Of a stretch of DNA of 64,000 nt, positions 734-45,105 are shown piece after piece (position 1 is the first letter of the stretch; each line of letters begins with the position of its first letter). Both the position numbers and the translations under genes were made by a program. The notes beneath the pieces are model-generated. The model saw only the letters and a list, made by a program, of their open reading frames with translations, did not search any database and was not told where the DNA came from. Source of the DNA: Macrostomum lignano (Eukaryota); the NCBI GenBank assembly GCA_002269645.1, contig NIVC01000677.1, forward strand, positions 372,001-436,000, read 5' to 3'.

Positions 734-3700
734 AATCTTCGCTATGAAGAAGGTGTGCTTAGACAGCGAAGAAGAGACGCGGTCAAGGTCCTTTGTCGAA
801 CGGGAAGCCAAGCTGCTGCAGAGGCTGTCCTGCTCGCATCTGGTCTGGTGCTACGCTGCCTTCGCTAACGAGGACTGCACCACCTTCTCCATTGTCACTG
901 TGAGCTAAATTGTTTTTTATTTTTACATGCTGCTCATAGTGACAATCTGACATGGCTTTTACTATTTCCTGGAACTTTAGAATTAGACTTTGGGACATCA
1001 AAGTGGACATTGGGCCCTCAAGTTAGACTTTAGGGGCGCCAAAGTAGACTGAGGATCCAAAGTAGACATTTCAGGCGCCAAAGTAGACATTATAGGCGCC
1101 AAAGTAGACATTATAAGCGCCAAAGTAGACATTAGAGGCGCCAAAGTAGACATTATAGGCGCCAAAATAGACATTGGAGGCACCAAAGTAGACTAAGGAT
1201 TCAAATTAGACATTGGGGGCGCCAGAGTCGACATAGAGGATCCAAAGTAGACTGAGGATCCAAAGTAGACTGAGGATCCAAAGTAGACATTGGAGGCGCC
1301 AAAATAGACATTGGATCTAAAGTAGCCATTGGGGAGTCAAAGTAGACATTGGGGAGTCAAAGTAGACATCGGGGAGTCAAAGTAGACATCGGGGAGTCAA
1401 AGTAGACATCGGGGAGTCAAAGTAGACATCGTGGAGTCAAAGTAGACATCGGGGAGTCAAAGTAGACATCGGGGAGTCAAAGTAGACATTGGGGAGTCAA
1501 AGTAGACATCGGGGAGTCAAAGTAGACATTGGGGAGTCAAAGTAGACATTGGGGAGTCAAAGTAGACATCGGGGAGTCAAAGTAGACATCAGGGAGTCAA
1601 AGTAGACATCGGGGAGTCAAAGTAGACATTGGGGAGTCAAAGTAGACATCGGGGAGTCAAAGTAGACATTGGGGAGTCAAAGTAGACATTGGGGAGTCAA
1701 AGTAGACATCGGGGAGTCAAAGTAGACATTGGGGAGTCAAAGTAGACATCGGGGAGTCAAAGTAGACATCGGGGAGTCAAAGTAGACATTGGGGAGTCAA
1801 AGTAGACATTGGGGAGTCAAAGTAGACATTGGGGAGTCAAAGTAGACATTGGGGAGTCAAAGTAGACATCGGGGAGTCAAAGTAGACATCGGGGAGTCAA
1901 AGTAGACATTGGGGAGTCAAAGTAGACATTGGGGTAGCCAAAGGAAGCACTGGGATACTACTGCAAAGCGGAGGTCAAGAATTCTGTTCAAAAGCAATCT
2001 CAACCTCGAACGTTCCCAAAGGACTATTGCGAAGGCGGAAATCTCGCTAAGCACATCGCCTGTAGGAAGATGGTGAGCTTGCTAATAGCATAAATTATTC
2101 GGATAAATTCCTAATTCGAATACTATATTAACTAAGCTTGTACATGTGTAAAATTTTTCAGACCAATGAAATTTTCGACGAAGACGAGATTATGCATGTA
2201 AGCTGCTCTCAGCTTCATTTCTAGTTGAACACTGTTATATTTGTAATTTATTTTCATTGCGCTTCATTTTGGCGCGTTTTAACTTTCTATTTTAGTGGTT
2301 CGTTCAAGCCACTCTTGGTCTGAACTATCTGCATAATAACGGAATTCTTCACAGGTGAGGCATCGGACTGACTGATTTTGTTTTATGCAGTAAGAGCAGT
2401 CTGTCTTGGTTGTGTTTCTTGGTATTTTCTTTTACCTGCTCTTCTAGATGCCAATCCATCCTCTTAGTCTTTGTTTAGGATGTCATTTAATCTCTTAGTC
2501 TTTGTTTGGAATGCCACCTCATCTGGTCTTTGTTTGAGATGCCAAACACATCTTCTGGTCTTTGTCTGAGACTCAGGTGCCAACCTCATCATCTGGTCTT
2601 TGTCCGAGATGCCACACACATCTTCTGGTCTTTGTCTGAGATGCCACACACATCTTCTGGTCTTTGTCTGAGACTCAGGTACCAACCTCATCATCTGGTC
2701 TTTGTCTGAAGCTCAGGTACCAACCTTATCATCTGGTTTTTGTCTGAGACTCTCAGGTACCAACCTCATCATCTGTTCTTTGTCTGAGGCTCTCAGGTAC
2801 CAACCTCATCATCTGGTCTTTGTCTGAGACTCTCAGGTACCAACCTCATCATCTGGTCTTTGTCTGAGGCTCTCAGGTACCAACCTCATTATCTGGTCTT
2901 TGTCTGAGACTCTCAGGTACCAACCTCATCATCTGGTCTTTGTCTGAGGCTCTCAGGTACCAACCTCATCATCTGGTCTTTGTCTGAGACTCTCAGGTAC
3001 CAACCTCATCATCTGGTCTTTGTCTGAGGCTCTCATGTGCCAACCTCATCATCTGTTCTTTGTCTGAGACTCTCAGGTACCAACCTCATCATCTGGTCTT
3101 TGTCTGAAACTCTCAGGTACCAACCTCATCATCTGGTCTTTGTCTGAGACTCTCAGGTACCAAACTCATCATCTGGTCTTTGTCTGAGGCTCTCAGGTAC
3201 CAACCTCATCATCTGGTCTTTGTCTGAGGCTCTCAGGTACCAACCTCATCATCTGGTCTTTGTCTGAGACTCTCAGGTACCAACCTCATCATCTGGTCTT
3301 TGTCTGAGACTCTCATGTGCCAAGTCCAGCTTCTAGTCTTTGTCTGAGACTCTCAGGTACCAACCTCATCATCTGGTCTTTGTCTGAAACTCTCAGGTAC
3401 CAACCTTATCATCTGGTCTTTGTCTGAAACTCTCAGGTACCAACCTCATCATCTGGTCTTTGTCTGAGACTCTCATGTGCCAAGTCCAGCTTCTAGTCTT
3501 TGTCTCACTGTCACGTGCCAACCCCAACTTCTAGTCTTCGTCTCAGACTCAGGTGCCATCCGGTATAAAGTCCATTGTAGACAAAAATGTTCAAATTATA
3601 ATCCAAAACCATTGCAGAGATCTTCGGCCCAGCAATGTGAATCTCACCAATAGAAATGTAGCCAAGCTGTGCGATTTCGGCTTCTCAAAATGCGTCGACA

Positions 3701-23500: not shown

Positions 23501-26249
23501 ATTCAGAGCTGATTGGGAATTCAACTGACATGGATTCAGCTGATTGGGAATTCAACTGACATGGATTCAGCTGATTGGGAATTCAACTGACATGGATTCA
23601 GCTGATTGGGAATTCAACTGACATGGATTCAGCTGATTGGGAATTCAACTGACATGGATTCAGAGCTGATTGGGAATTCAACTGACATGGATTCAGCTGA
23701 TTGGGAATTCAACTGACATGGATTCAGCTGATTGGGAATTCAACTGACATGGATTCAGAGCTGATTGGGAATTCAACTGACATGGATTCAGCTGATTGGG
23801 AATTCAACTGACATGGATTCAGAGCTGATTGGGAATTCAACTGACATGGATTCGGAGCTGATTGGGAATTCAACTGACATGGATTCAGAGCTGATTGGGA
23901 ATTCAACTGACATGGATTCAGAGCTGATTGGGAATTCAACTGACATGGATTCAGAGCTGATTGGGAATTCAACTGACATGGATTCGGAGCTGATTGGGAA
24001 TTCAACTGACATGGATTCAGAGCTGATTGGGAATTCAACTGACATGGATTCAGCTGATTGGGAATTCAACTGATATGGATTCAGAGCTGATTGGGAATTC
24101 AACTGACATGGATTCAGAGCTGATTGGGAATTCAACTGATATGGATTCAGCTGATTGGGAATTCAACTGACATGGATTCAGAGCTGATTGGGAATTCAAC
24201 TGACATGGATTCGGAGCTGATTGGGAATTCAACTGACATGGATTCAGAGCTGATTGGGAATTCAACTGACATGGATTCAGAGCTGATTGGGAATTCAACT
24301 GATATGGATTCAGAGCTGATTGGGAATTCAACTGACATGGATTCAGAGCTGATTGGGAATTCAACTGACATGGATTCAGAGCTGATTGGGAATTCAACTG
24401 ACATGGATTCAGAGCTGATTGGGAATTCAACTGACATGGATTCAGAGCTGATTGGGAATTCAACTGACATGGATTCAGAGCTGATTGGGAATTCAACTGA
24501 CATGGATTCAGAGCTGATTGGGAATTCAACTGACATGGATTCAGAGCTGATTGGGAATTCAACTGACATGGATTCAGAGCTGATTGGGAATTCAACTGAC
24601 ATGGATTCGGAGCTGATTGGGAATTCAACTGACATGGATTCAGAGCTGATTTGGAATTCAACTGACATGGATTCAGCTGATTGGGAATTCAACTGATATG
24701 GATTCAGAGCTGATTGGGAATTCAACTGACATGGATTCAGAGCTGATTGGGAATTCAACTGACATGGATTCGGAGCTGATTGGGAATTCAACTGACATGG
24801 ATTCAGAGCTGATTGGGAATTCAACTGACATGGATTCAGCTGATTGGGAATTCAACTGATATGGATTCAGAGCTGATTGGGAATTCAACTGACATGGATT
24901 CAGAGCTGATTGGGAATTCAACTGACATGGATTCGGAGCTGATTGGGAATTCAACTGACATGGATTCAGAGCTGATTGGGAATTCAACTGACATGGATTC
25001 AGAGCTGATTGGGAATTCACTGACATGGATTCACATGAAATGTATTCAACGTGGATTTAACATAAATTACATAATAGTCAGTTCCAATCGTCACTGATGC
25101 AAGCAGTCATAAATTAACCAACCTTCAACTCTTTGATCGCGTGCAAATAGTCCAGACTAGCAATGCAGTACTGGTTGCGATGCAGCTGAGCTAAATTATC
25201 CAAATCTGTTTCAACTTTAGTACGCGACTGGCCCAGGCTCTTAGCCAGCGAAGCCTCATAATCGTCGCTAGCTTTTTCGAAGGCTTTGGCCAGGTCAGCC
25301 AGCGGCTGCAGCGAAGTGTTAATAAAAGTCTGCATCCTGGTCTGCGTGTCGCGAATTGAAGCCACCAAATCCTGTTTGGGAAGAGTTTTGGCAAATATCA
25401 AAGCGACAGTCAGTCCTGATAACCTACTTATTCTAATTCCATTGGCTAGCATAAAAGCAGATATTCGCAGGACTGTCCCGCAACCAGCGGTGCAGCCATT
25501 CTACCGATTCGCAGATACTGTACATATAAACACGACAATTTTCGTGCACAAGCATACATGCGCAACAGTCGGCCGACCGATTTGGCGGCCAAACAAGGAA
25601 GTCGCAAAAATGCCCACCCAAAAAATACCCAAGTAGTAGTACTAAGTAGCTGACGAGGCATTTTGACTTAATAAGACGGTCATAGTTACTCCTGCCGTGT
25701 ACCCAAAGTAGCGTTAATTTTGCTTTACGCTAGGTTTTTTTACACGTAAATCGCATTTTTGGCCAAAAACTACGTCGCATTTTGTTAAAACTAAGTCGCA
25801 TGGCCGACCGAATTTTGGAGGTTGCGCATGTATGTGCACAAGCCCCAAACACGGAATCGAACCAGGGTTGGTGGCGCGTTTACCGCTGAGCATCTCTGTC
25901 CCGTTTTCAAGCTAAAGGCAGGCATACAATTCCGTTCGCAACTGGAAACCAAACCAACCTGAAAATCGTCTTGAAAGTGTTCAACAATTTTGACTAGTTT
26001 CTTTGACGAACTGGTAACTTTATCGTTGTCAACAAAGGATTCGGTCAGCTCGGTCAGACTGGACGTTAACAGTCCCAGGGAGGCGGCAAACTGCCTGCCA
26101 GCTTCGGTCACTGTGGCTAGAATCGATGCAGTCTTCTGGTAGCGGCACTTCAGCATAGCAACCTCGCGCTCGCTAGAAGCCAGGGAGTCGCGGAACCGAG
26201 GCGTATCCTTGATACCAGCCTCAAATGTTAGGCTGTTGAGCACTTCCAT
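17557..26249 (-). CDS. ACAP: ACAP/centaurin-beta (BAR-PH-ArfGAP-ankyrin); exons 26249-25959, 25371-25123, 23175-22978, 19778-19017, 18267-17557, 736 aa
   Basis: BAR start ([14 protein letters not shown]), PH ([19 protein letters not shown]), ArfGAP CCDC-x16[12 protein letters not shown], ankyrin repeats (RTPLIAC, KTALHHA); all introns phase 0 GT-AG. Confidence 0.93.
18388..18932. repeat. 29-bp minisatellite (ACCTGAGGATCTGGGATAACAGCGGCTTG) in ACAP intron 4
   Basis: Direct tandem repetition. Confidence 0.95.
19789..20702. repeat. 22-bp minisatellite (CAGCCTGTTGGTCAGCTATTGA) in ACAP intron 3
   Basis: About 41 units abutting the exon-4 acceptor. Confidence 0.96.
21325..21336 (-). other. Candidate 12-nt ACAP microexon (Thr-Cys-Arg-Ser)
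   Basis: Minus strand TTTTTGCAG|ACTTGTCGAAGT|GTAAGT; phase 0-0 matches the flanking exons. Confidence 0.55.
21655..22860. repeat. 39-bp AC-rich minisatellite in ACAP intron 3, degenerating to shorter units
   Basis: Unit ACACACTGACAGACTCAAAACAAACCGAAACACACAAAG. Confidence 0.96.
23208..25032. repeat. 33/31-bp minisatellite (TGATTGGGAATTCAACTGACATGGATTCAG[AG]C) in ACAP intron 2
   Basis: About 55 units in two length variants differing by AG. Confidence 0.97.
25553..25834 (+). mobile_element. hAT-family MITE (282 bp), TSD TGCACAAG, in ACAP intron 1
   Basis: TIR CATACATGCGCAAC / GTTGCGCATGTATG; identical 8-mer at 25545-25552 and 25835-25842. Confidence 0.92.
25843..25900 (-). mobile_element. tRNA-derived SINE head fragment
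   Basis: Minus strand GGGACAGAGATGCTCAGCGGT (A-box-like)...GGTTCGATTCC (B box); similar to 45915-46005. Confidence 0.5.
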
Positions 26250-27856: not shown

Positions 27857-28142
27857 CATATATGCACAAACCCCCTGATTTGCACTGGTCATGCGACTTA
27901 CTTTTTGACCAAAAATGCAACTTACTTATGAAAGAAACCCTAGAGCAACATTAATGCAATTTTGGGTAAATGGCAAGAGTAACTATAACTGTTACTCCTA
28001 ACTGTTACAAGGGCTAAATGCTTCATCATCTAATTAGTACTACATCTGTATTCTTTGGGGTGGGCATTTTTGCGACTTACCCCTAGTCTACCATAATTTA
28101 GTGGCCAGATCGGCCAAGTTGGCTAGCAGTTGCACATGTATG
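27857..28142 (-). mobile_element. Old, decayed copy of the 282-bp hAT MITE
   Basis: Reverse-complement similarity to 25553-25834; TIRs CATATATGCACAA / TTGCACATGTATG; 7/8 TSD ATTATACT / ATTATATT. Confidence 0.75.
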
Positions 28143-31375: not shown

Positions 31376-31725
31376 CATACATGCCTAACACCTGTCCAAC
31401 CTATCCAAACCAGATAGGTGAAATCGCCGCTAGCCAAGGTAAGTCGCAAAATCAAACATGCAAAAAACAAAAAACAAGGGTAAGAAAAAAGAAGAGGAAG
31501 AGAAAAAAATAAAGAAAGAAGTAAGAGAAGAGAGAGGGGAAAAAGGAAAGAGAAGAAAAGAAAAAATGCAAGAAAATTCATATACAAAATGATAATTAAG
31601 TTGCAATTGGGGGAGCAAAGTTGCAATCAGGAGGAACTAAGTCGCAATTGGGAGAAACTAAATCACAAATCTAGACAAAACTAAGTTGCACCAGATAGGT
31701 AAAATTTTGAGGTTAGGCATGTATG
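31376..31725 (+). mobile_element. hAT-family MITE variant (350 bp), TSD CCTATAAG
   Basis: TIR CATACATGCCTAAC / GTTAGGCATGTATG; identical 8-mers at 31368-31375 and 31726-31733; internal AAGTCGCA/AAGTTGCA motifs and purine-rich filler. Confidence 0.88.
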
Positions 31726-33019: not shown

Positions 33020-36000
33020 ATGTCTCTCCGTCGACTTGTCCAATTCGCCACTGTTGGCACTGCATCAGCATGGCGACGGCGTCGGCCCTACCTTCTGGTT
33101 GGCATGGCAACCGTGGCCACATCGGGCGCGGCGCTGGCTCTGTCTATTAAAAGAGAAAACTGGCCGGAATTGCCACTTCCAGCTGTTGTCAAATCGGCAC
33201 CCGTGTGCAGCGCGGCCAGCATTGGGCGGCCGCAGCACTGGATGACCGACCCAGTGTCCGAGACAGGCTGGCTATGCGATCCGTCCAATAGTGCCGAGCC
33301 CCGAGTCGGCATGGAGCGACTCTGTATGGATTTGCAGGTTTGACTGGCTTGTGTCTATGCTGCTCCTAGATAGTGCGTGTTTTCATTGCCTAGGTCATTG
33401 ATTGTTTCCTTAGGAATGCCTGTTTCCTAGATTTGCGTCTAATCTTATCGCCCTCTAGAGTCGTGTCTAATCGCCATCTAGATTCGTATCTAATCACCAT
33501 CTAGAGTCGTGTCTAATCGCCATCTAGATTCGTATCTAATCACCATCTAGAGTCGTGTCTAATCGCCATCTAGATTCGTATCTAATCACCATCTAGAGTC
33601 GTGTCTAATCGCCATCTAGATTCGTATCTAATCACCATCTAGAGTCGTGTCTAATCGCCATCTAGATTCGTATCTAATCACCATCTAGAGTCGTGTCTAA
33701 TCGCCATCTAGATTCGTATCTAATCACCATCTAGAGTCGTGTCTATTCCCATCTAGATTCGTATCTAATCACCATTTAGAGTCGTGTCTAATCAACATCT
33801 AGAGTCGTGTCTAATCACCATCTAGAGTCGTGTCTAATCAACATCTAGAGTCGTGTCTAATCACCATCTAGATTCGTATCTAATCACCATCTAGAGTCGT
33901 GTCTAATCGCCATCTAGATTCGTATCTAATCACCATCTAGAGTCGTGTCTAATCGCCATCTAGATTCGTATCTAATCACCATCTAGAGTCGTGTCTAATC
34001 GCCATCTAGATTCGTATCTAATCACCATCTAGAGTCGTGTCTAATCGCCATCTAGATTCGTATCTAATCACCATCTAGAGTCGTGTCTATTCCCATCTAG
34101 ATTCGTATCTAATCACCATTTAGAGTCGTGTCTAATCAACATCTAGAGTCGTGTCTAATCACCATCTAGAGTCGTGTCTAATCAACATCTAGAGTCGTGT
34201 CTAATCACCATCTAGATTCGTATCTAATCACCATCTAGAGTCGTGTCTAATCGCCATCTAGATTCGTATCTAATCACCATCTAGAGTCGTGTCTAATTGC
34301 CATCTAGATTCGTATCTAATCACCATCTAGAGTCGTGTCTAATCGCCATCTAGATTCGTATCTAATCACCATCTAGAGTCGTGTCTATTCCCATCTAGAT
34401 TCGTATCTAATCACCATTTAGAGTCGTGTCTAATCAACATCTAGAGTCGTGTCTAATCACCATCTAGAGTCGTGTCTAATCAACATCTAGAGTCGTGTCT
34501 AATCACCATCTAGAGTCGTGTCTAATCATCATCTAGATTCGTATCTAATCACCATCTAGATTCGTATCTAATCACCATCTAGATTCGTATCTAATCACCA
34601 TCTAGAGTCGTATAATTTCTCCAAGTGACATGTCTCCATAGACTGAGTACAACATTGTATGACTATAACATAATTAAATCTACATATTCAAGGGCCGCCT
34701 ATGCCGCGCCATGGAAGAACTGGACGGCGAAGCCCGTTTCATAGTTGACAAATGGGCTCGGCCCTCCGGCGGCGGCGGCATCTCCTGCGTGCTAACCGAC
34801 GGTGTCGTGTTTGAACGGGCCGGCGTCAACATCAGCGTGGTGCACGGCAGCCTCACCCAGCAGGCTGTGCGCCAGATGAACTCGCGGCCGGATCGGCACA
34901 AGCTGCCCGAGGGCAAGGAGCTGCCATTCTGCGCTATCGGCATTAGCTCGGTTATCCATCCGCGCAATCCGTTTGTCCCAACTATGCACTTTAATTTCCG
35001 CTACTTCGAAATTGACGATGGCAAAGGCGGCGTCTCTTGGTGGTACGGCGGCGGCGCCGATCTGACGCCGACGTTTCTCGATAAAGACGACGCGACGCAT
35101 TTCCACAGGACGCTGAAGGCCGCCTGCGATAACCACGACAAGTGAGCGACGTTGCGTTACGTTTATTGACCTTGGGTAGGCAGGGGTAACGCCTCTGTAG
35201 CGCAAGCAGTCAATCATGGCTTGAATCGACACAGTCGGTTAATAGCCGATCTAGAGTTTTATTAGGCATAAACACCTTTTTAGATCTTCAGACCTTTAAT
35301 GGACCTTACATTTCAATAGGCATCCAGACCTTCAATACACTCAGACCCTCAAAAGACACACCCAGACCCTCAATATATATACAGTCAGCCCCTCAATAGG
35401 CACCCAGACCTTCAATACACTCAGACCTTCAATACACTCAGACCTTCAATACACTCAGACCTTCAATACACTCAGACCCTCAAAAGACACACCCAGACCC
35501 TCAATATATATACAGTCAGCCCCTCAATAGGCACCCAGACCTTCAATACACTCATGCTTGGGCGCAACCTAGGGATTCACCCGGCCGTTTCTATTGGCAA
35601 CACACACACGTAAGTCGCTATTGGACAGAATAGTAGTCACGTGACTGCTCTCAACCAATAGCGACTTACATGTGTGTGTTGCCAATAGAAACGGCCGGGT
35701 GATTCCCAAGGTTGCGCGTGTATGAATACACTCAGACCTTCAATACACTCAGACCCTCAAAAGACACACCCAGACCCTCAATATATATACAGTCAGCCCC
35801 TCAATAGGCACCCAGACCTTTAATACACTCAGACCTTCAATACACTCAGACCCTCAAAAGACACACCCAGACCCTCAATATATATACAGTCAGCCCCTCA
35901 ATAGGCACCATACATGCGCAACCTTGGGATTCTCTCGGCCGTTTCTATTGGCAACACACACATGTAAGTCGCTATTGGCTGAGAGCAGTCACGTGACTAC

Positions 36001-37520: not shown

Positions 37521-38309
37521 CGTTAATCTTCTTAGCATAAGTCAGTCCTGAAAAATATGTTATAAAGTGTAACCACTCGATTTGTGAGTTTTGCTAATCA
37601 TCGTCTTATCTATTACTTTTTCATTACATATACACTCTGGCGCTGGTTTTCCCTAGTTTGAATTGGTGCTCTTTTGCTTATACTATGCGCATATTTGCAT
37701 CCTGTGTAGTTTCCAGTTTAGCGACCAAGAGATTCATTGATAATTTGACAGCAATCACTTAATTAATGCACTTAGTTATATGCGCTTTAATGTGCATTTT
37801 TATTGCCCTAAATATACGTTATTTCCTAATTAATCTTTCTAATGCTTCAGCTTTACTCATAGAATGTGTTTTTTATCGGAAAGCTTGTTTCGCAAATATC
37901 TGGATTGTATTTTACCCCTAATTCTGCAGTAAAAATGAACGGGGTCTGGATGCTTAGTAAAGCATATTGGGTCGAATTTTCCTGTTTTATATTTTTTAAC
38001 CAGACAATTACTTACAAGTCAGGCATAGCAGGCTTTAGTTTGAGCAACACAAGCATTAGACAGGCAACTTTAGTTTGAATGGGTTGTAGCATAGTCATAC
38101 ATGCGCAACAGTCGGCCGAGTCGGCCGATCCGGCCGACCGATTTGGCGGCCAACCAAGTAAGTCGCAAAATTGATTAACCGCCAAAAAAAACGAAAAAAC
38201 AAAAGACGAAAAAGGGGAAAGGAAAAGGAAAAAATGAGAAAAAGGGAGCAAAGAGAAAGAGAAAAACACAAAAAGAGTTGTAAGTGCTGTAAGTTGCAGC
38301 ACTGAAGAC

Positions 38310-39830
38310 AAGGTAAGTCGCACCGAGGGCAAGCTAAGTCGCACCGAGGGCAAGCTAAGTCGCAGCAGGACCGAGCTAAGTCGCATCGAGGGCGAACTAA
38401 GTCGCACCGAGCGAGAGCTAAGTCGCACCGAGGGCGAGCTAAGTCGCACCGAGGGCAAAATAAGTCGCACCGAGCGAGAGCTAAGTCGCACTAAGTCGCA
38501 GCAGGACCGAGCTAAGTCGCACCGAGGGCGAGCTAAGTCGCAGCAGGACCGAGCTAAGTCGCACCGAGGGCGAACTAAGTCGCACCGAGCGAGAGCTAAG
38601 TCGCACTAAGTCGCAGCAGGACCAAGCTAAGTCGCACCGAGGGCGAGCTAAGTTGCAGCAGGACCGAGCTAAGTCGCACCGAGGGCGAACTAAGTCGCAC
38701 CGAGCGAGAGCTAAGTCGCACTGAGGGCGAGCTAAGTCGCAGCAGGACCGAGCTAAGTCGCACCGAGGGCGAACTAAGTCGCACCGAGCGAGAGCTAAGT
38801 CGCACTAAGTCGCAGCAGGACCAAGCTAAGTCGCACCGAGGGCGAGCTAAGTTGCAGCAGGACCGAGCTAAGTTGCACCGAGGGCGAACTAAGTCGCACC
38901 GAGCGAGAGCTAAGTCGCACTGAGGGCGAGCTATGTCGCAGCAGGACCGAGCTAAGTCGCACTAAGGGCGAGCTAAGTCGCACCGAGGGCAAAATAAGTC
39001 GCACCGAGCGAGAGCTAAGTCGCACTAAGTCGCAGCAGGACCGAGCTAAGTCGCACCGAGGGCGAGCTAAGTTGCAGCAGGACCGAGCTAAGTCGCACCG
39101 AGGGCGAACTAAGTCGCACCGAGCGAGAGCTAAGTCGCACTGAGGGCGAGCTAAGTCGCAGCAGGACCGAGCTAAGTCGCACTAAGGGCGAGCTAAGTCG
39201 CACCGAGGGCAAAATAAGTCGCACCGAGCGAGAGCTAAGTCGCACTAAGTCGCAGCAGGACCGAGATAAGTCGCAACGAGGGCGAGCTAAGTCGCAGCAG
39301 TACCGAGCTAAGTCGCACCGAGGGCGAACTAAGTCGCACCGAGCGAGAGCTAAGTCGCACTAAGTCGCAGCAGGACCGAGCTAAGTCGCACTAAGTCGCA
39401 GCAGGACCGAGCTAAGTCGCACCGAGGGCGAGCTAAGTCGCACCGAGCGAGAGCTAAGTCGCACCGAGGGCGAGCTAAGTCGCAGCAGGACCGAGCTAAG
39501 TCGCATCGAGGGCGAACTAAGTCGCACCGAGCGAGAGCTAAGTCGCACTGAGGGCGAGCTATGTCGCAGCAGGACCGAGCTAAGTCGCACTAAGGGCGAG
39601 CTAAGTCGCACCGAGGGCAAAATAAGTCGCACCGAGCGAGAGCTAAGTCGCACTAAGTCGCAGCAGGACCGAGCTAAGTCGCACCGAGGGCGAGCTAAGT
39701 CGCACCGAGGGCGAGCTAAGTCGCACCGAGCGAGAGCTAAGTCGCACTGAGGGCGAGCTAAGTCGCAGCAGGACCGAGTAAGTCGCAGCAGGGCCGAGGT
39801 AAGTCGCAGCAGGACTGAGTTAAGTCGCAG
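38310..39830. repeat. ~21-bp subterminal satellite (CTAAGTCGCA + variable 11-mer) with ~220-bp higher-order repeat, inside the hAT element
   Basis: About 70 copies of CTAAGTCGCA; blocks 38795-39025 and 39015-39245 repeat at 220-bp offset. Confidence 0.95.
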
Positions 39831-40033
39831 AGCATCTTTAGGATTATTAGGATAGGATTAGTTTAGGATGAATTTAATGTATCACTTACTAGGGTGTAGG
39901 CTACGTGTGCATTAACGCATCAATTTGAAAAATTAAGAATTACGAAGCCAGAAATGGCTAAGGAATAGAAATAGGGATAGAATAACTTATAAGCAGTAAT
40001 TTTTCAGCCCTATTACAATTGCAAATCATACTT

Positions 40034-43000
40034 TTAATAATATTTAATTAGCAAATTAAAACTGCAAGATTCTAACGGTCTTATATATGAACTTAGAAGA
40101 ACTGTAGTCTGACCAGAGATTGTCCTTTCTGTAGCGCGTTCTGAAGCATCTGCATCTCTAGAGTCTGAATCAGAAAGATGGTCCTCTGTTTCAGATTCAG
40201 AGCTGTCATCTTCCATTCCAAACCGTCTAGCAAGAGGTATGATTCTCGAACTGTATGTAAAGACAGTATGTAATGTTTCAGCATTAGGCAATAACACTGG
40301 GTTGAGCACATTAAATATTGAGTAGTCATCCTCAGGAAAATAATTACGCAGCTGATCAATTATGCTATCAATGATTCGACTGCGAATCTCATCCAGTGCT
40401 GGATAAGCTCCCATGTCAACAACACTGCCACGTCCACTAGCATCAAATAATCTATTTCTTAGAGATCTGTCTGCAGCAGAACCTGGTTGCTTCAACTCAA
40501 ACCTCTCTGTTGGATCGCTGCTTCCAGGGCCGGAAGGACAAGCAAAGTTAGAATAAGATAGGTCTCTTGTGTGACATCCTGAATGGTATTCCAGCTGCGG
40601 ATATCCATCTGCAGTTCCCAAAACTCGACGACACTTGCAGGAAGCCAAAAAGTCCACAATGCGAGGACCATTGTTCGTTTTTAAGGTTTCTAGTGAATGG
40701 ATAAGGTTAGTGTGGCGTTCTTGCAAGCCAATAAATGTACCCTTGGCTCTTTGAAACTGCAAGGACTCAAATTCCAGTAATTTTAGAATGTCCATGAGAA
40801 ATAGATGTAATGAATAATACCGGACATTTTGCAATGTTTTCAATAATCCAGAGGCAGTTGCTTTACTTTCGTCATCAAAGCCTGAGGAAGGTGATTTGAT
40901 ATTTTCTAAATTTGTCAGAAGCAAGTAGTACGACTTTCGAATCACATCAAGAGCAGACACTTCCGATGCAACCCACCTGATGCGATATATTCTTTTTAAT
41001 TCATAGAAAACCAAGTTGAGTGCTTCCGAAGTTTGTGCCAAAGATGCCTTACGTTTAACAGCGTGGCTCATATAAAATTTGTGTAGAGAATTTATATTCT
41101 TATCGAGATGTTGCATAAATGGGAAGATTTCAAAGGCATGATAGATTGAAAGTTCTAACTTATGCGCTGCACAATGGTGCTGAAAAAATTGTTTGCTAGC
41201 CCAAGGCCTCAGTTGACTTATTAATCCCACTCGACTTCCTGTCATTACGGATGCACCATCAGTTGTCACCCCAATAGCCTTCGTTTGATTTCATCTTCTA
41301 GCTTGTCATCCGAAAATAAACGGATGAGAAGTTCATAAATGCTTCGTCCAGTCTCTACTTCAGTCAGACGTTTAAACCGATAAAAAACATCAAATGTTGG
41401 CTGTTTTCAAGAACTCTGAAGTATATCATGACGTAGCTGTTTGAATGAATATCAGACGTTGTATCTAGTACAATAGAAATCGGAAGATTGTCAGCACTTT
41501 TAATGTAATTCACAAATGTCCGATGCATTGTATTACTGATTGATTCCACCATTGCTGCGGCACTTTTGCGATGCTTATGATGGCTCCCCATATCCAACCC
41601 ATTTTTTACTTGTAAATCAATTATATTTGGATGAGCACTGAATGGAATATTAGATTTGACTTCGGCATAAACTGTTGTCAAAACTCGGGCTGTTATTTCA
41701 TCTCGTTTAGTTTTAGCTAGTCTAGCGGCCTCATTCATCTGTTTGAGTTGCTTTGCAAGAACTGAAGTATGTTTTTCCTTCATCCACTTTATGGCGTCAC
41801 TGAAGTGTATTTGATGAATGTTCCTGTAGTTTTCTTCGTACGCTATCTTTTGCATGACCTTTGGGAATGTAGCCTTGTTCTGTTGCAAAAGTTAACTTAC
41901 GTTGGCTCTCTAGATTTGTCTCCTTTTTCTTATGTGCATTCAAAAATTTTCTGCAGATCCGACATTGTATTCCAGATCTTGATAGATCTTCGGTGTTTTG
42001 AACATATTGAAACCATGTCTTCATTTCTTGTGACACAAATTTTCTTGAAAATGATCTGCAATGGTCAAATTAGAGAATATTTTGGGATTTGGACTATTTG
42101 TGAGTATCTAAAAGCAATATGCTAATAAGTGCAATACACAATACACTATACATTAATTTACAGTTCGTCAGTTTCCATTTACTTACTGTGACTGGTGCAT
42201 CTCCAAAGAATGTAACCACTCCTCTCGAAAACCAGATGTATCCTCCCAGTCCTTTTTAGGGAAAACTTCAATATTTTCGCCCATCATAGAGGAAGACGAG
42301 GGCTTTGATGCTGAAGTGGCTAGACATGCGTCTGCAGATGTGCTTATGCATGGTATTTTTTTTTGCGATGGCCCTGCTTCTGCAGTATTTACTTGTACTA
42401 TTTCAACATCACCTGAACCCCTTGAGTCGCTCGAATCTAAATCAACAATAGGACTTTGGCAAAGTGATCGTTTCGTTGATTGTCTTTGAATATTTACTTG
42501 CCTAATAATTTCCACTTGTAGTTTGCTTGTTTGCTGGTCATTCTCCAACAACTCTCTTCTTTCCTGTACATTTGCAGCAGAGCAAAAATTAGAAGTTTCT
42601 GCAGCAGCAGTTTGAACAGCATGATCTCGATTAGCTGCTATTTGCTCTGAAAATTCATAGGACCTGGCCAATTCACTACGGTGTGAGCTTTCAGAACATG
42701 GAGCTGGAGCAGGAGCTAGTCGCATTTCGATTCTTTCTGTTGCTGATGAAGCAGATGCTAATGCTGAGTCTGCCAATGTACCTGCTTCTCTTGAAGGTGT
42801 ATTTATGATGGCTTCAATATTGTCCTCTAAAATCCAATGAGCACCTGAGCAGTCATTTTCTCTACCTGGAGTCAACTGTCCAAGTTTCCACCTTGTAAAA
42901 AGCAAAGGCTTTCGTAACTCACTGCTGGATTCAGGGCACCGGTTTATTGAATAGTCCTCATGACCAAGTTCATCCCATTCTCTTGCTGGCTTTAAGATGT

Positions 43001-43813
43001 AGTTGGGCTTGTCTCTTAGCCTACGATAAATGGACTAAAAAATGTGCACCTGTTATTTTGTGTACTTCGTGCATAGATGATCATGTCATGCACATTGTTC
43101 CTAATAATTTCAGCTAATGAGTTATCAATGATAATTTTATCTTCATAAACAGGTCTTCTTTGTGTTGCATGCATTTTAGCTAGTCGCAGTTTTCCAATGC
43201 TACTGGCAGTTGTGGAACTTGAACTGTCCGATTCTGATCTAGAAAAGTCTCGTTGATACAAGAGAATAATGGCCATAGCACTTTTACCATTCCCATTCTT
43301 TAATGCATTTGGTTCTGTTGGAATTGTCTTACTAGCAGACTTGAAAAAATCAATGATGGATGACTGCGATGATCCACTAGGAGCGGAACTTGGCAGCCCA
43401 TGTCTAGTTTTTCCCTGATACCCAATAGATGTATCGGTAAAAAACATATCTGCTGCTTCCTGCTTCTCTTTTGATGCAATAACAAAGAAACTGCTGTCCG
43501 TTTTGAAGCCCGAGGACCGATAGAAGTCAGCAGAAAATGAAACCACAGGTCGTCTAAAATCGCCGCTATATTCTTGAACTCCAATCAGAAGAAAATCACG
43601 GAGTCTCACTAGCACTGATCCTAATAGCATTGCAGTTGTGGAACAAACTTTCTTCAGCTCAATGAACTCTGAAAATTCTTGAGATCCAATATTAGGCTCA
43701 TCAGTATTTAACTCATTTATAACAATTGAGCACTCACTCTCAGCTAGAATACCATTGATAGCTAGGATGCCACTTAGAATCAGTAGGCAAAGACAACTAA
43801 GGCTGTACATCAT
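40034..43813 (-). pseudogene. Frameshifted signal peptide / LTD-like / zinc finger / ZNF862-like hAT transposase
   Basis: Segments: MMYSLSCLCLLILSG..; INELNTD..EFIEL..D.IIY..SINRC..WKLG..TPGRENDC; intron 42186-42056; W-F..C..C..H zinc finger; SIVLDTTSD (D1); TTDGAS (D2); HCAAHKL (CxxH); RWVASE. Four frame breaks near 43030, 41800, 41385 and 41270; no C-terminal catalytic-Glu/dimerisation region seen. Confidence 0.8.
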
Positions 43814-44257
43814 TCTGTGAAAGATTAAGTCGAGTATATGATTTTGGTGATAAAATAAAATTGATTTATGAGTATTACTATATAAATAAAACATTTAAAA
43901 GCCCTTACCTTTACCAATTCATGTACAGAAAGTAAGTGTAAATACAACCAATTGCCTTGGTAGTTTAGTTATATGCTCGTATCAGATGCAGGCAGACAGC
44001 ATAGGCTGCCAAGGTGCTATAAGTTAAGGTTAACTTTCACTATTTGGCTTTACAGACTGCTTTTATCGCTGCATGCATTGACTTAGCCTTAGCTTGTGCC
44101 ATCATACTCATACAGCTATATATACATATGTATCTCTGCCACTCCCCACTTTTGCAACCTTACACTGTACAATCATGCCTAAAACACTCCGTGTCAAGTG
44201 TACTGTTCTAGTGCCACATGGGGTACAAATACGATTAGGAATGACAAGAGTCAAAAC

Positions 44258-44544
44258 CATACATGCACAATAGTTGGCCGATATGGACGACTGATTTGGC
44301 GGCCAACCAAGGTAAGTTGCAAAAATGCCCACCCAAATAAATACCAAAGTAGTATTAAGTAGCTGACGAAGCATTTTGCCTTAATAAAGACAGTTATAGT
44401 TACTCCTGCCGTTTACCCAAAGTTGCGTTAATTTTGCTTTTAGGTTTTTTTCATGTAAGTCGCATTTTTGGCCGAAAACTACGTCGCATTTTTGTTAAAA
44501 CTAAGTCGCACGGCCGACCAAATTTTGGAGGTTGCGCATGTATG
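44258..44544 (+). mobile_element. MITE-like module forming the right end of the hAT element (internal second left TIR at 44258)
   Basis: CATACATGCACAA at 44258; colinear with the free MITE 25553-25834; no TSD of its own. Confidence 0.85.
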
Positions 44545-44849
44545 AGCATAGTGGTTAGAACGTTCGGATTAACGACTGAAACATTGGGGGTTCGATTTCG
44601 ACCCAACTCGGAACAATTTGTGTCCTTGAGCAAGACACTTAACTCTGCATTGCTTCAGTTCAACCAGCTGTAAAATGGGTGCCAGCACTAGCTGGGGTAG
44701 TTGAGGCTGTGTGTGTGGCGACCCCCCCCCCCCCAGTTTTGGGACTGAACAGCCGTACGCAGCCTTCAGCTGCAGCTGAGCTGTCGGTTGCACATCAGCT
44801 CATTAGAGCAGGTGTGATCAAATATTATAGTTATAATTATTTTGTTTGA

Positions 44850-45105
44850 CCAATACAAGCATTAGACAGGTAGTTGTAATTGACCAATAGAGACATTAGG
44901 CAGACAGTTTTCTGTTCCATGCAGACATTAGACAGGTAGTTGTAATTGACCAATAGAGACATTAGGCAGACAGTTTTCTGTTCCATACAGACATTAGACA
45001 GGTAGCTGTAATTGACCAATAGAGACATTAGGCAGACAGTTTTCTGTTCCATACAGACATTGGACAGGTAGCTGTAATTGACCAATAGAGACATTAGGCA
45101 GACAG
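44850..45105. repeat. 66-bp tandem repeat (~3.7 units)
   Basis: Unit CATTAGACAGGTAGTTGTAATTGACCAATAGAGACATTAGGCAGACAGTTTTCTGTTCCATGCAGA. Confidence 0.92.

Follow-up and report, generated by a model that had tools for sequence, protein, structure and literature searches.

A hAT transposon of Macrostomum lignano whose transposase gene probably carries a signal-type leader and a lamin-tail-domain-like head

The locus

We analyzed a stretch of 64,000 nucleotides from the flatworm Macrostomum lignano (GenBank assembly GCA_002269645.1, contig NIVC01000677.1, positions 372,001 to 436,000 of the forward strand), referred to here as the window, in which all coordinates are given unless another locus is named. 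Positions 38096-44544 of the window are a hAT transposon with its gene on the minus strand, bounded by 14-bp terminal inverted repeats (TIRs) and an 8-bp target-site duplication (TSD). The element is probably a decayed autonomous hAT whose single two-exon gene joins a leader, a head resembling the lamin tail domain (LTD) and the transposase, with the head being ancestral to the clade to which the element belongs. DDE transposases are regarded as enzymes of the nucleus and cytoplasm only. A preliminary description had recognized a start codon, a leader, LTD-type motifs, a frame break, an intron and transposase motifs in this gene, and each of these was found at its minus-strand position. The gene is laid out as follows.

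43742..43813, minus strand: leader, signal-peptide-like and hydrophobic, MMYSLSCLCLLILSGILAINGILA; start ATG at 43813
42825..43741, minus strand: exon 1, N-module, predicted cysteine-rich LTD-like beta-sandwich with insertions (AlphaFold2, hhalign)
42187..42824, minus strand: exon 1, linker, low-complexity and helical region with a basic patch and the KDWEDTSGFREEWLHSLEMHQS motif
42056..42186, minus strand: predicted intron, phase-2 GT-AG, 131 nt; donor CA|GTAAGT, acceptor TTGCAG|A
40034..42055, minus strand: exon 2, hAT RNase-H-like core preceded by a CxxC...H...H finger, frameshifted and shortened by a deletion

Evidence for one gene in two exons

The predicted splice joins HQSQ to SFSRKFVSQEMKTWFQY and leads on to CRICRKF. 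A GTAAG(T/A) donor interrupts one and the same codon after its second base both in the window and at four related loci, namely L005 (M. lignano, same assembly, NIVC01002610.1 10001-11953, 98.5% nucleotide identity to the window), L001, L006 (M. lignano, NIVC01000196.1 8079-13323, about 72% identity) and L004, where the donor phase is still kept even though the head is only 53% identical. The apparent stop of the upstream open reading frame (ORF) is a TAA within the donor sequence itself. The intron of L006 differs in both sequence and length, and its removal restores the frame as HQSA|YFSRKFVTNEMKTWFQY. Nine distant relatives (P0024, P0025, P0027, P0028, P0029, P0037, P0098, P0125, P0161) read without interruption across the junction, with the pattern WEDTSxFxxxWxxxxxxHQ......K.W..Y......S.F.C..C, and in the L019 lineage a polypyrimidine-AG acceptor separates the N-module ORF from the transposase ORF, both of which are on one strand. 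Because the donor phase is conserved, the acceptors preserve the frame, the junction is colinear with uninterrupted ORFs and fused relatives exist, the upstream ORF and the transposase are, by sequence comparison, two exons of a single gene. The phase-2 intron at 42186-42056, proposed earlier from the window as joining the two frames, is thus supported by a donor conserved in five sequences and by an acceptor in L006 that keeps the frame.

It is very unlikely that we are dealing instead with two separate genes, a captured secreted-protein ORF ending at the TAA within GTAAGT and a transposase starting from MKTWFQY. ORF callers do terminate P0001 and P0002 at the donor TAA, and the GenBank annotation of P0004 starts at MKTWFQY, but a TAA is inevitable in a phase-2 GTAAGT donor. 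Moreover, the residues that precede the Met of MKTWFQY (FSRKFV) are conserved and are in frame after splicing in L006; the Met itself is not conserved in relatives outside the Macrostomum clade, which continue unbroken through the junction pattern given above; and 35 relatives are single fused ORFs. We consider the two-gene reading already close to refuted. The same lack of conservation of the Met speaks against a conserved alternative start, alternative starts having been among the earlier suggestions for two products.

Head-only ORFs of other lineages (P0038, P0045, P0051, P0053, P0059, P0061, P0063, P0066, P0075, P0096, P0118) break off at a common, conserved position, W-E-x-x-K-[YH]-F-[KRQ] in alignment A4, while P0056 reads past it into NDWIDKIEKHQ. 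The conserved end suggests a conserved intron at a site other than the Macrostomum one.

Element boundaries and mobility

The ends of the element were detected by a custom TIR scan; a generic inverted-repeat tool had missed them. The features outside the gene are listed below, with MITE standing for miniature inverted-repeat transposable element.

38088..38095, no strand: TSD, 8 bp, AGCATAGT (plus-strand sequence), gene-3' side; identical to 44545-44552
38096..38109, minus strand: TIR CATACATGCGCAAC, gene-3' element end; perfect inverted match to 44531-44544
38314..39830, minus strand: tandem array with a 21-bp unit repeated ~72 times; motif GCGACTTAG (Tandem Repeats Finder)
43814..44257, minus strand: 5' non-coding region of the element, presumed promoter and 5' untranslated region; colinear with L005 (99%) and L001 (85%) down to 44257
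44258..44544, minus strand: gene-5' terminal unit, MITE-like; inner TIR-like site at 44258, outer TIR at 44531-44544
44545..44552, no strand: TSD, 8 bp, AGCATAGT, gene-5' side (TIR/TSD scan)

As expected of the hAT superfamily, the TIRs are short, a perfect 14-bp CATACATGCGCAAC in the window, L005 and L006, and the TSDs are 8 bp long (AGCATAGT in the window, CTTGGGTT in L005, AATTTAAA in L006). The three are independent insertions of one hAT family, and since all of these TSD-flanked insertions carry both exons between their TIRs, the exons belong to one mobile unit. The TIRs, the perfect TSDs at three insertions and the existence of MITE derivatives show that the element moves by ordinary hAT cut-and-paste. 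The claim of a TIR/TSD-bounded element therefore holds, with TIRs at 38096-38109 and 44531-44544 and AGCATAGT on both sides. It can hardly be believed that the arrangement reflects chance adjacency, with a hAT copy beside the exon of a host secreted protein, or a domesticated, transposase-derived host gene: the presence of both exons within the same TIR/TSD unit at three independent sites contradicts both versions, the copies are decaying through frameshifts and deletions, and MITE derivatives exist. No convincing TIRs or TSDs emerged from searches in L007, L016, L017 and L019, whose contigs are AT-rich or truncated.

Three MITE-like elements in the window (25553-25834, 31376-31725 and 27857-28142) have the same or near-identical 14-bp TIRs; two have perfect 8-bp TSDs (TGCACAAG, CCTATAAG), while the third short element has a 7/8 match. 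They are non-autonomous relatives of the hAT element. Two solo ends of the same TIR type are also present in the window, at 35711-35724 and 35909-35922. The 287 bp at the gene-5' end of the hAT element (44258-44544) form a complete MITE-like unit by themselves and are 86% identical to a free MITE at 25547-25838, the homology of L001 with the window ends exactly at 44257, the edge of this MITE-like unit, and a 56-bp direct repeat connects 44272-44327 with 38119-38173; the hAT element may have regained one of its ends from a MITE.

The 21-bp array makes up the gene-3' part of the element and is common to the window, L005 and L006 copies. Exact matches to GCGACTTAG number 65 in the whole window, 63 of them inside the array, with a chance expectation of 0.36 per window; the motif also occurs in the opposite subterminus (44501-44509, within 44456-44510) and in the MITE (25791). 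These repeats are possible transposase-binding subterminal repeats. Just outside the element there is a 66-bp tandem repeat (44853-45105), with units that are 95-98% identical.

Fused relatives

The head profile (A2) was built from P0001 and P0002, the two closest heads, both of them transposase-free, and was used in an exhaustive search with a threshold of E<=1e-3, which returned 184 proteins. Both modules are present in one polypeptide in 35 of the 150 matches listed among these 184, and 17 of the fused proteins are 1000-1250 aa long. One of the relatives, P0030, is the sole ORF longer than 100 aa on its strand of a 4625-bp contig (there is one 100-aa antisense ORF), and the ends of that contig are 43-bp inverted repeats. 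Cluster look-ups for 20 relatives gave only metagenome or Logan sources, none with a name or a reference-database source. Word-indexed protein searches returned no named head-bearing protein; the one with a 71-sequence alignment retrieved just 5 close proteins, none of them named. Literature searches, with work on M. lignano hATs represented by titles and abstracts, turned up no account of an LTD-transposase fusion or of a signal peptide of a hAT transposase.

Heads are about 25% identical to each other across relatives. To judge from the same modular order in these distant relatives and in the M. lignano insertions, the head appears to be an ancestral, selectively maintained part of the transposase in a whole unannotated hAT clade; we infer that a secreted LTD-type protein gave rise to it in a single acquisition, before the clade diversified, and that it is functional. 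Of the earlier suggestions, conservation of the upstream ORF with the transposase in other copies was supported, as was one gene encoding leader, LTD-like domain and transposase, for which the splice sites, the colinear junction, the 35 fused relatives, the three TSD-flanked insertions and the conserved position of the leader all speak; captured cargo in a local sense was not, because the module is ancestral to the whole transposase clade.

Selection was gauged from the ratio of nonsynonymous to synonymous substitution rates (dN/dS). This ratio is 0.21 for exon 1 of the window versus L001, 0.14 for the N-module of L001 versus L004 (where dS is saturated) and 0.14 for the transposase core of the window versus L006. 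Because the values are similar in head and core, the head seems to be kept as coding sequence as strictly as the enzyme, under purifying selection.

The head and the lamin tail domain

In the window the head contains the motifs ECSIVINELNTD (43735-43700), EFSEFIEL (43678-43655), SINRCP (42950-42933) and LTPGRENDCSG (42875-42843), and after a 1-nt frame correction exon 1 reads SIYRRL...SINRCP...LTPGRENDCSG...KDWEDTSGFREEWLHSLEMHQSQ. Pfam LTD is the only family matched by more than two of 71 heads: six match it at E<=10, with a best E of 0.0011, and the alignment of residues 55-103 of P0062 to model positions 7-53 scores 14.6 bits against a cut-off of 34.3 and covers only the N-terminal half of the domain. 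Neither half of the conceptual translation of the window matched any Pfam family even at E<=10, and P0001 likewise has no LTD match. NCBIfam gave nothing relevant for the 71 heads, and a sequence-profile search of PDB with the head gave nothing.

Profile-profile comparison with hhalign was carried out against eight prokaryotic lamin-tail-domain proteins annotated by the Prokaryotic Genome Annotation Pipeline. Over its full length the head aligns colinearly with the complete LTD (4-239 versus 1-152, P 1.8e-4, probability 48%); taken separately, the N-terminal half aligns with the start of the LTD (P 3e-4) and the C-terminal half with its end (P 6e-5), again colinearly. The observed scores were 28-33, as compared to a mean of 9-10 and a maximum of 15.8 for 60 column-shuffled controls, and to 8.6-13.6 for reversed ones. 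This points to homology of the head to bona fide LTDs at a level that is moderate, not decisive.

Structure prediction by AlphaFold2 with family alignments gave confident, strand-rich models, extending over residues ~20-365 of P0001, and with a predicted local distance difference test (pLDDT) score of 83.7 and a predicted template modelling (pTM) score of 0.81 for P0035. In Foldseek the top PDB hits of these models are immunoglobulin (Ig) V-type domains (best E 0.012, probability 0.72, TM-score 0.2-0.4); a search with one model against the BFVD viral library gave no hit at E<=1e-3. The structural check proposed in the preliminary description was thus answered in part, by a confident strand-rich fold with weak Ig V similarity, and not by a match at 1e-3 or by a lamin tail among the best 50 listed. 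The LTD-like assignment itself stands by the hhalign comparison and its controls, and not by the Pfam cut-off or by Foldseek at 1e-3.

Six cysteine columns are conserved in the heads: C47 and C76 are jointly present or jointly absent in 52 of 56 sequences, and four others (C275, C312, C341, C392) are near-invariant. This pattern fits disulfides and would also be compatible with zinc binding. We conclude that the head is likely a divergent LTD with large insertions, which is a remote-homology call and not membership by the Pfam standard.

Leader and linker

Among the relatives, 76 begin with Met and hold the strand C-x-[IV]-[IV]-I-N-E-x-N. In 60 of these 76 N-complete sequences an 8-residue hydrophobic core (Kyte-Doolittle hydropathy at least 2.0) is found upstream of that strand, and the median distance from Met to motif is 25 aa. 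The leaders are fixed in position and variable in sequence, and they share an n-h-c layout with small residues ahead of a polar or acidic mature end, as would be expected of a cleavable signal peptide for the endoplasmic reticulum (ER). Full-length fused proteins with such a leader include P0023, P0029, P0030, P0057, P0070 and P0101.

No transmembrane (TM)-like segment is found between head and transposase in 19 long relatives, of which 13 have a basic cluster in the linker. The basic patch reads RKRPC in an intact Macrostomum relative and is degraded to QKKIPC (42365-42348) in the window. A conserved N-x-R-K-R-[RKH] patch in the linker (A4 columns ~780-800) fits both a pat4-type nuclear localization signal (NLS) and a furin/Kex2-type site; the latter reading would matter if the protein enters the secretory pathway. 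Further along, the KDWEDTSGFREEWLHSLEMHQS motif of the window (42254-42189) corresponds to the WEDTSxF...W conserved in relatives. In the linker part of the AlphaFold2 model, pLDDT is low at residues 373-384 and 484-553, with helices between them.

Transposase core and decay of the window copy

The transposase motifs of exon 2 on the minus strand are LDTTSD (41468-41451), TTDGAS (41266-41249), HHCAAHKL (41179-41156) and IRWVASE (40981-40961); the D, D, CxxH and RW positions align with those of relatives and define a hAT RNase-H-like core. Exon 2 is 98% identical to M. lignano P0003 (for which PF27073 and PF05699 are precomputed) and 70% to P0004. In the finger region the CRIC...H...H pattern is conserved; there is no Pfam match to it in the window, while P0010 and P0015 carry PF25431 (zf-C17orf113). 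The hATC region (PF05699) and the ERGFS motif with the catalytic E are absent from the window copy, lost by deletion; PF05699 is present in P0030, P0034 and P0057 (E 2e-6 to 8e-6) and in L005/P0003. In the ERGFS motif of L005/P0003 the catalytic E is replaced by K.

The break in exon 1 is a 1-nt loss at the T-run 43036-43043, where intact relatives read RCTFFESIYRRL. Lesions that the preliminary description had not listed are three frameshifts in exon 2 (-2 nt at ~41801, -1 at the T-run at 41383, and -1 at the G-run at 41270) and a 506-bp deletion at 40109/40110, which takes out the hATC dimerization region and the ERGFS motif; because of this deletion, the apparent end of the gene at 40034 is the stop of a shortened, out-of-context tail. 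The window copy is a non-functional pseudogene. Programmed -1 frameshifting at the T-run 43036-43043 was considered and rejected, as the heptamer does not lie in the right register and one extra base is simply present in intact relatives. L005 has the same exon-1 frameshift as the window, together with a private 2-nt insertion and a 39-nt deletion. Since this frameshift is common to two insertions that arose independently, the window copy and L005, the subfamily was probably mobilized in trans. Errors of long-read assembly could account for some of the homopolymer indels but are an unlikely cause of the 2-nt loss and of the 506-bp deletion.

Other copies show changes of their own. Exon 1 of L006 is truncated 5' of RSTHNNRCTFF with an in-frame stop, and ~840 bp of unrelated sequence replace the leader and the N-terminal half of the head. 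L001 (92% identical, with an intact exon 1) has a 658-bp insertion upstream of the ORF (428-1085), and its intron has a CCACT-type microsatellite expansion relative to the window (2964-3040).

Comparison with known systems

The element shares with hATs of the FAM200-ZBED5 type (PF27073) the 8-bp TSD, the short TIRs, the D/D/CxxH/RW core and an N-terminal CxxC...H...H finger pattern, and its intact relatives also share a C-terminal hATC with ERGFS. The nearest named relatives are 'KIAA1586-like', 'C17orf113-like' and 'ZNF862-like' proteins; those recovered (P0008, P0010 and P0011, 397-691 aa) do not match the A2 head profile. Unlike them, the clade of the window element has ~400-500 conserved residues (leader, LTD-like domain and linker) ahead of the finger.

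Prokaryotic secreted LTD proteins (PF00932), such as WP_168723441.1 of Streptomyces sp. SAT1, have the same order of a leader followed by x-I-N-E-x...E-x-[IV]-E-L. The Streptomyces domain ends in ...SWSRCPDG...TLGAPNDCGG and the transposon head in ...SINRCPES...KLGQLTPGRENDCSG, which have in common S-x-x-R-C-P...G-x-P-N-D-C-G. The head differs in its length, ~300 aa versus ~110-150 aa for prokaryotic LTDs, with a variable loop and helical inserts between its halves, in falling below the Pfam cut-off, and in being fused to a transposase in a eukaryote. The Ig-fold of nuclear lamin tails belongs to the same Pfam family as the prokaryotic LTDs and is a beta-sandwich in a nuclear-envelope context; it has no direct sequence match to the head, is absent among the 50 best PDB hits listed (which are mostly antibody V domains), and lamins, unlike the transposon head, have no signal peptide. 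The envelope protein (Env) of errantiviruses and endogenous retroviruses is a mobile-element protein with an ER signal, but it offers a conceptual analogy only: Env is a separate ORF of a long-terminal-repeat retroelement, with a TM anchor and fusion machinery, whereas in the window family the leader is on the DDE transposase itself, with no TM segment and no match to a viral fold.

Interpretation

According to the reading that we favor, the polypeptide would begin with a signal-type leader, followed by a beta-sandwich rich in cysteines, which would carry large insertions and be a remote homologue of lamin-tail domains. A linker would come next, in part disordered and in part helical, with a basic NLS-like patch; then the WEDTSxF...W and CxxC...H...H finger region, split by the 131-nt phase-2 intron; and finally the FAM200/ZBED5-type hAT RNase-H core, with a hATC dimerization region bearing the catalytic E in intact relatives. 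The head would derive from a secreted LTD-type protein, from which it would have retained the leader and cysteines of the disulfide type.

Several points weigh against this reading. The leader assignment rests on hydropathy, position and residue pattern, and the predicted 42187^42055 junction on sequence comparison; the GenBank models of the M. lignano paralogues P0003 and P0004 begin within exon 2. By the comparisons above, the first exon appears to be missing from the models now available for these genes in M. lignano. None of the 71 heads reaches the gathering threshold of Pfam LTD (PF00932), Foldseek comparison of two AlphaFold2 models with PDB yielded nothing at E<=1e-3, and the 50 best PDB hits listed include no lamin tail. 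The frameshift shared by independent insertions reflects either trans mobilization of copies with a broken head or long-read homopolymer errors. Finally, no mechanism is established by which an enzyme of the nucleus would make use of a conserved ER signal, and the functional part of the reading is accordingly an inference.

As to function, we hold only tentatively that ER targeting by the leader is incomplete or inefficient, that the protein left in the cytosol enters the nucleus by way of the basic patch of the linker, and that the LTD-like domain may be an accessory module binding DNA, chromatin or the nuclear envelope. It is somewhat doubtful that the head is exclusively nuclear, that is, that the LTD-like region is an extra DNA- or chromatin-binding domain whose cysteines bind zinc, and that the hydrophobic stretch is no secretion signal, being a buried or oligomerization helix, or a tether to the inner nuclear membrane. 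In its favor, a transposase has to reach nuclear DNA, the linker has basic NLS-like patches and no stop-transfer TM segment, and C275, C312, C341 and C392 could together coordinate zinc as a Zn(Cys)4 site. In bacteria, fusions of LTDs to nucleases are common, and DNA binding is known for the Ig-fold of lamins. Against it, the leaders are laid out in the n-h-c manner of cleavable signals, divergence of this depth (about 25% head identity) should have erased an ER signal that is not used, and the co-varying C47/C76 and the RC...NDC pair, common to the secreted Streptomyces LTD, resemble disulfides.

We regard it as improbable that the protein or its head is routed through the secretory pathway and exported, or kept in the lumen of the ER or the perinuclear space, for an intercellular step (for example one that leads from the soma to the germline or from one individual to another) or for regulation in the lumen. 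The conserved signal-type leader, a cysteine-rich, extracellular-type domain related to secreted prokaryotic LTDs, and the lack of a TM segment that would hold the transposase in the cytosol are all consistent with such a route; but export has neither precedent nor evidence, an exported transposase carries no transposon DNA and would require re-entry, endosomal escape and nuclear import, and the basic patches of the linker fit simple nuclear import equally well. Cell-to-cell movement, raised in the preliminary description, is pure speculation.

Significance

The element is a hAT with an unprecedented, conserved N-terminal module, which is a strange layout for an enzyme that has to act on nuclear DNA. 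A whole clade retains a secretion-type leader and a cysteine-rich LTD-like head, under purifying selection as strong as that on the catalytic core, and ~180 orphan metagenome protein clusters gain a name. M. lignano is a transgenic flatworm model. We know of no luminal or extracellular step described for any DDE transposon; in the improbable event that the leader works as an ER signal, and that the life cycle takes the transposase, or the LTD-like head of it, along the secretory pathway, examples of such a step would be a checkpoint in the perinuclear lumen, or transfer of transposase protein to germ cells from somatic or accessory ones, or from organism to organism. In broad terms, the head of this clade may be an accessory domain of a new kind, taken over from a secreted protein to bind DNA or the nuclear envelope, or else the transposase may have an overlooked step of trafficking.

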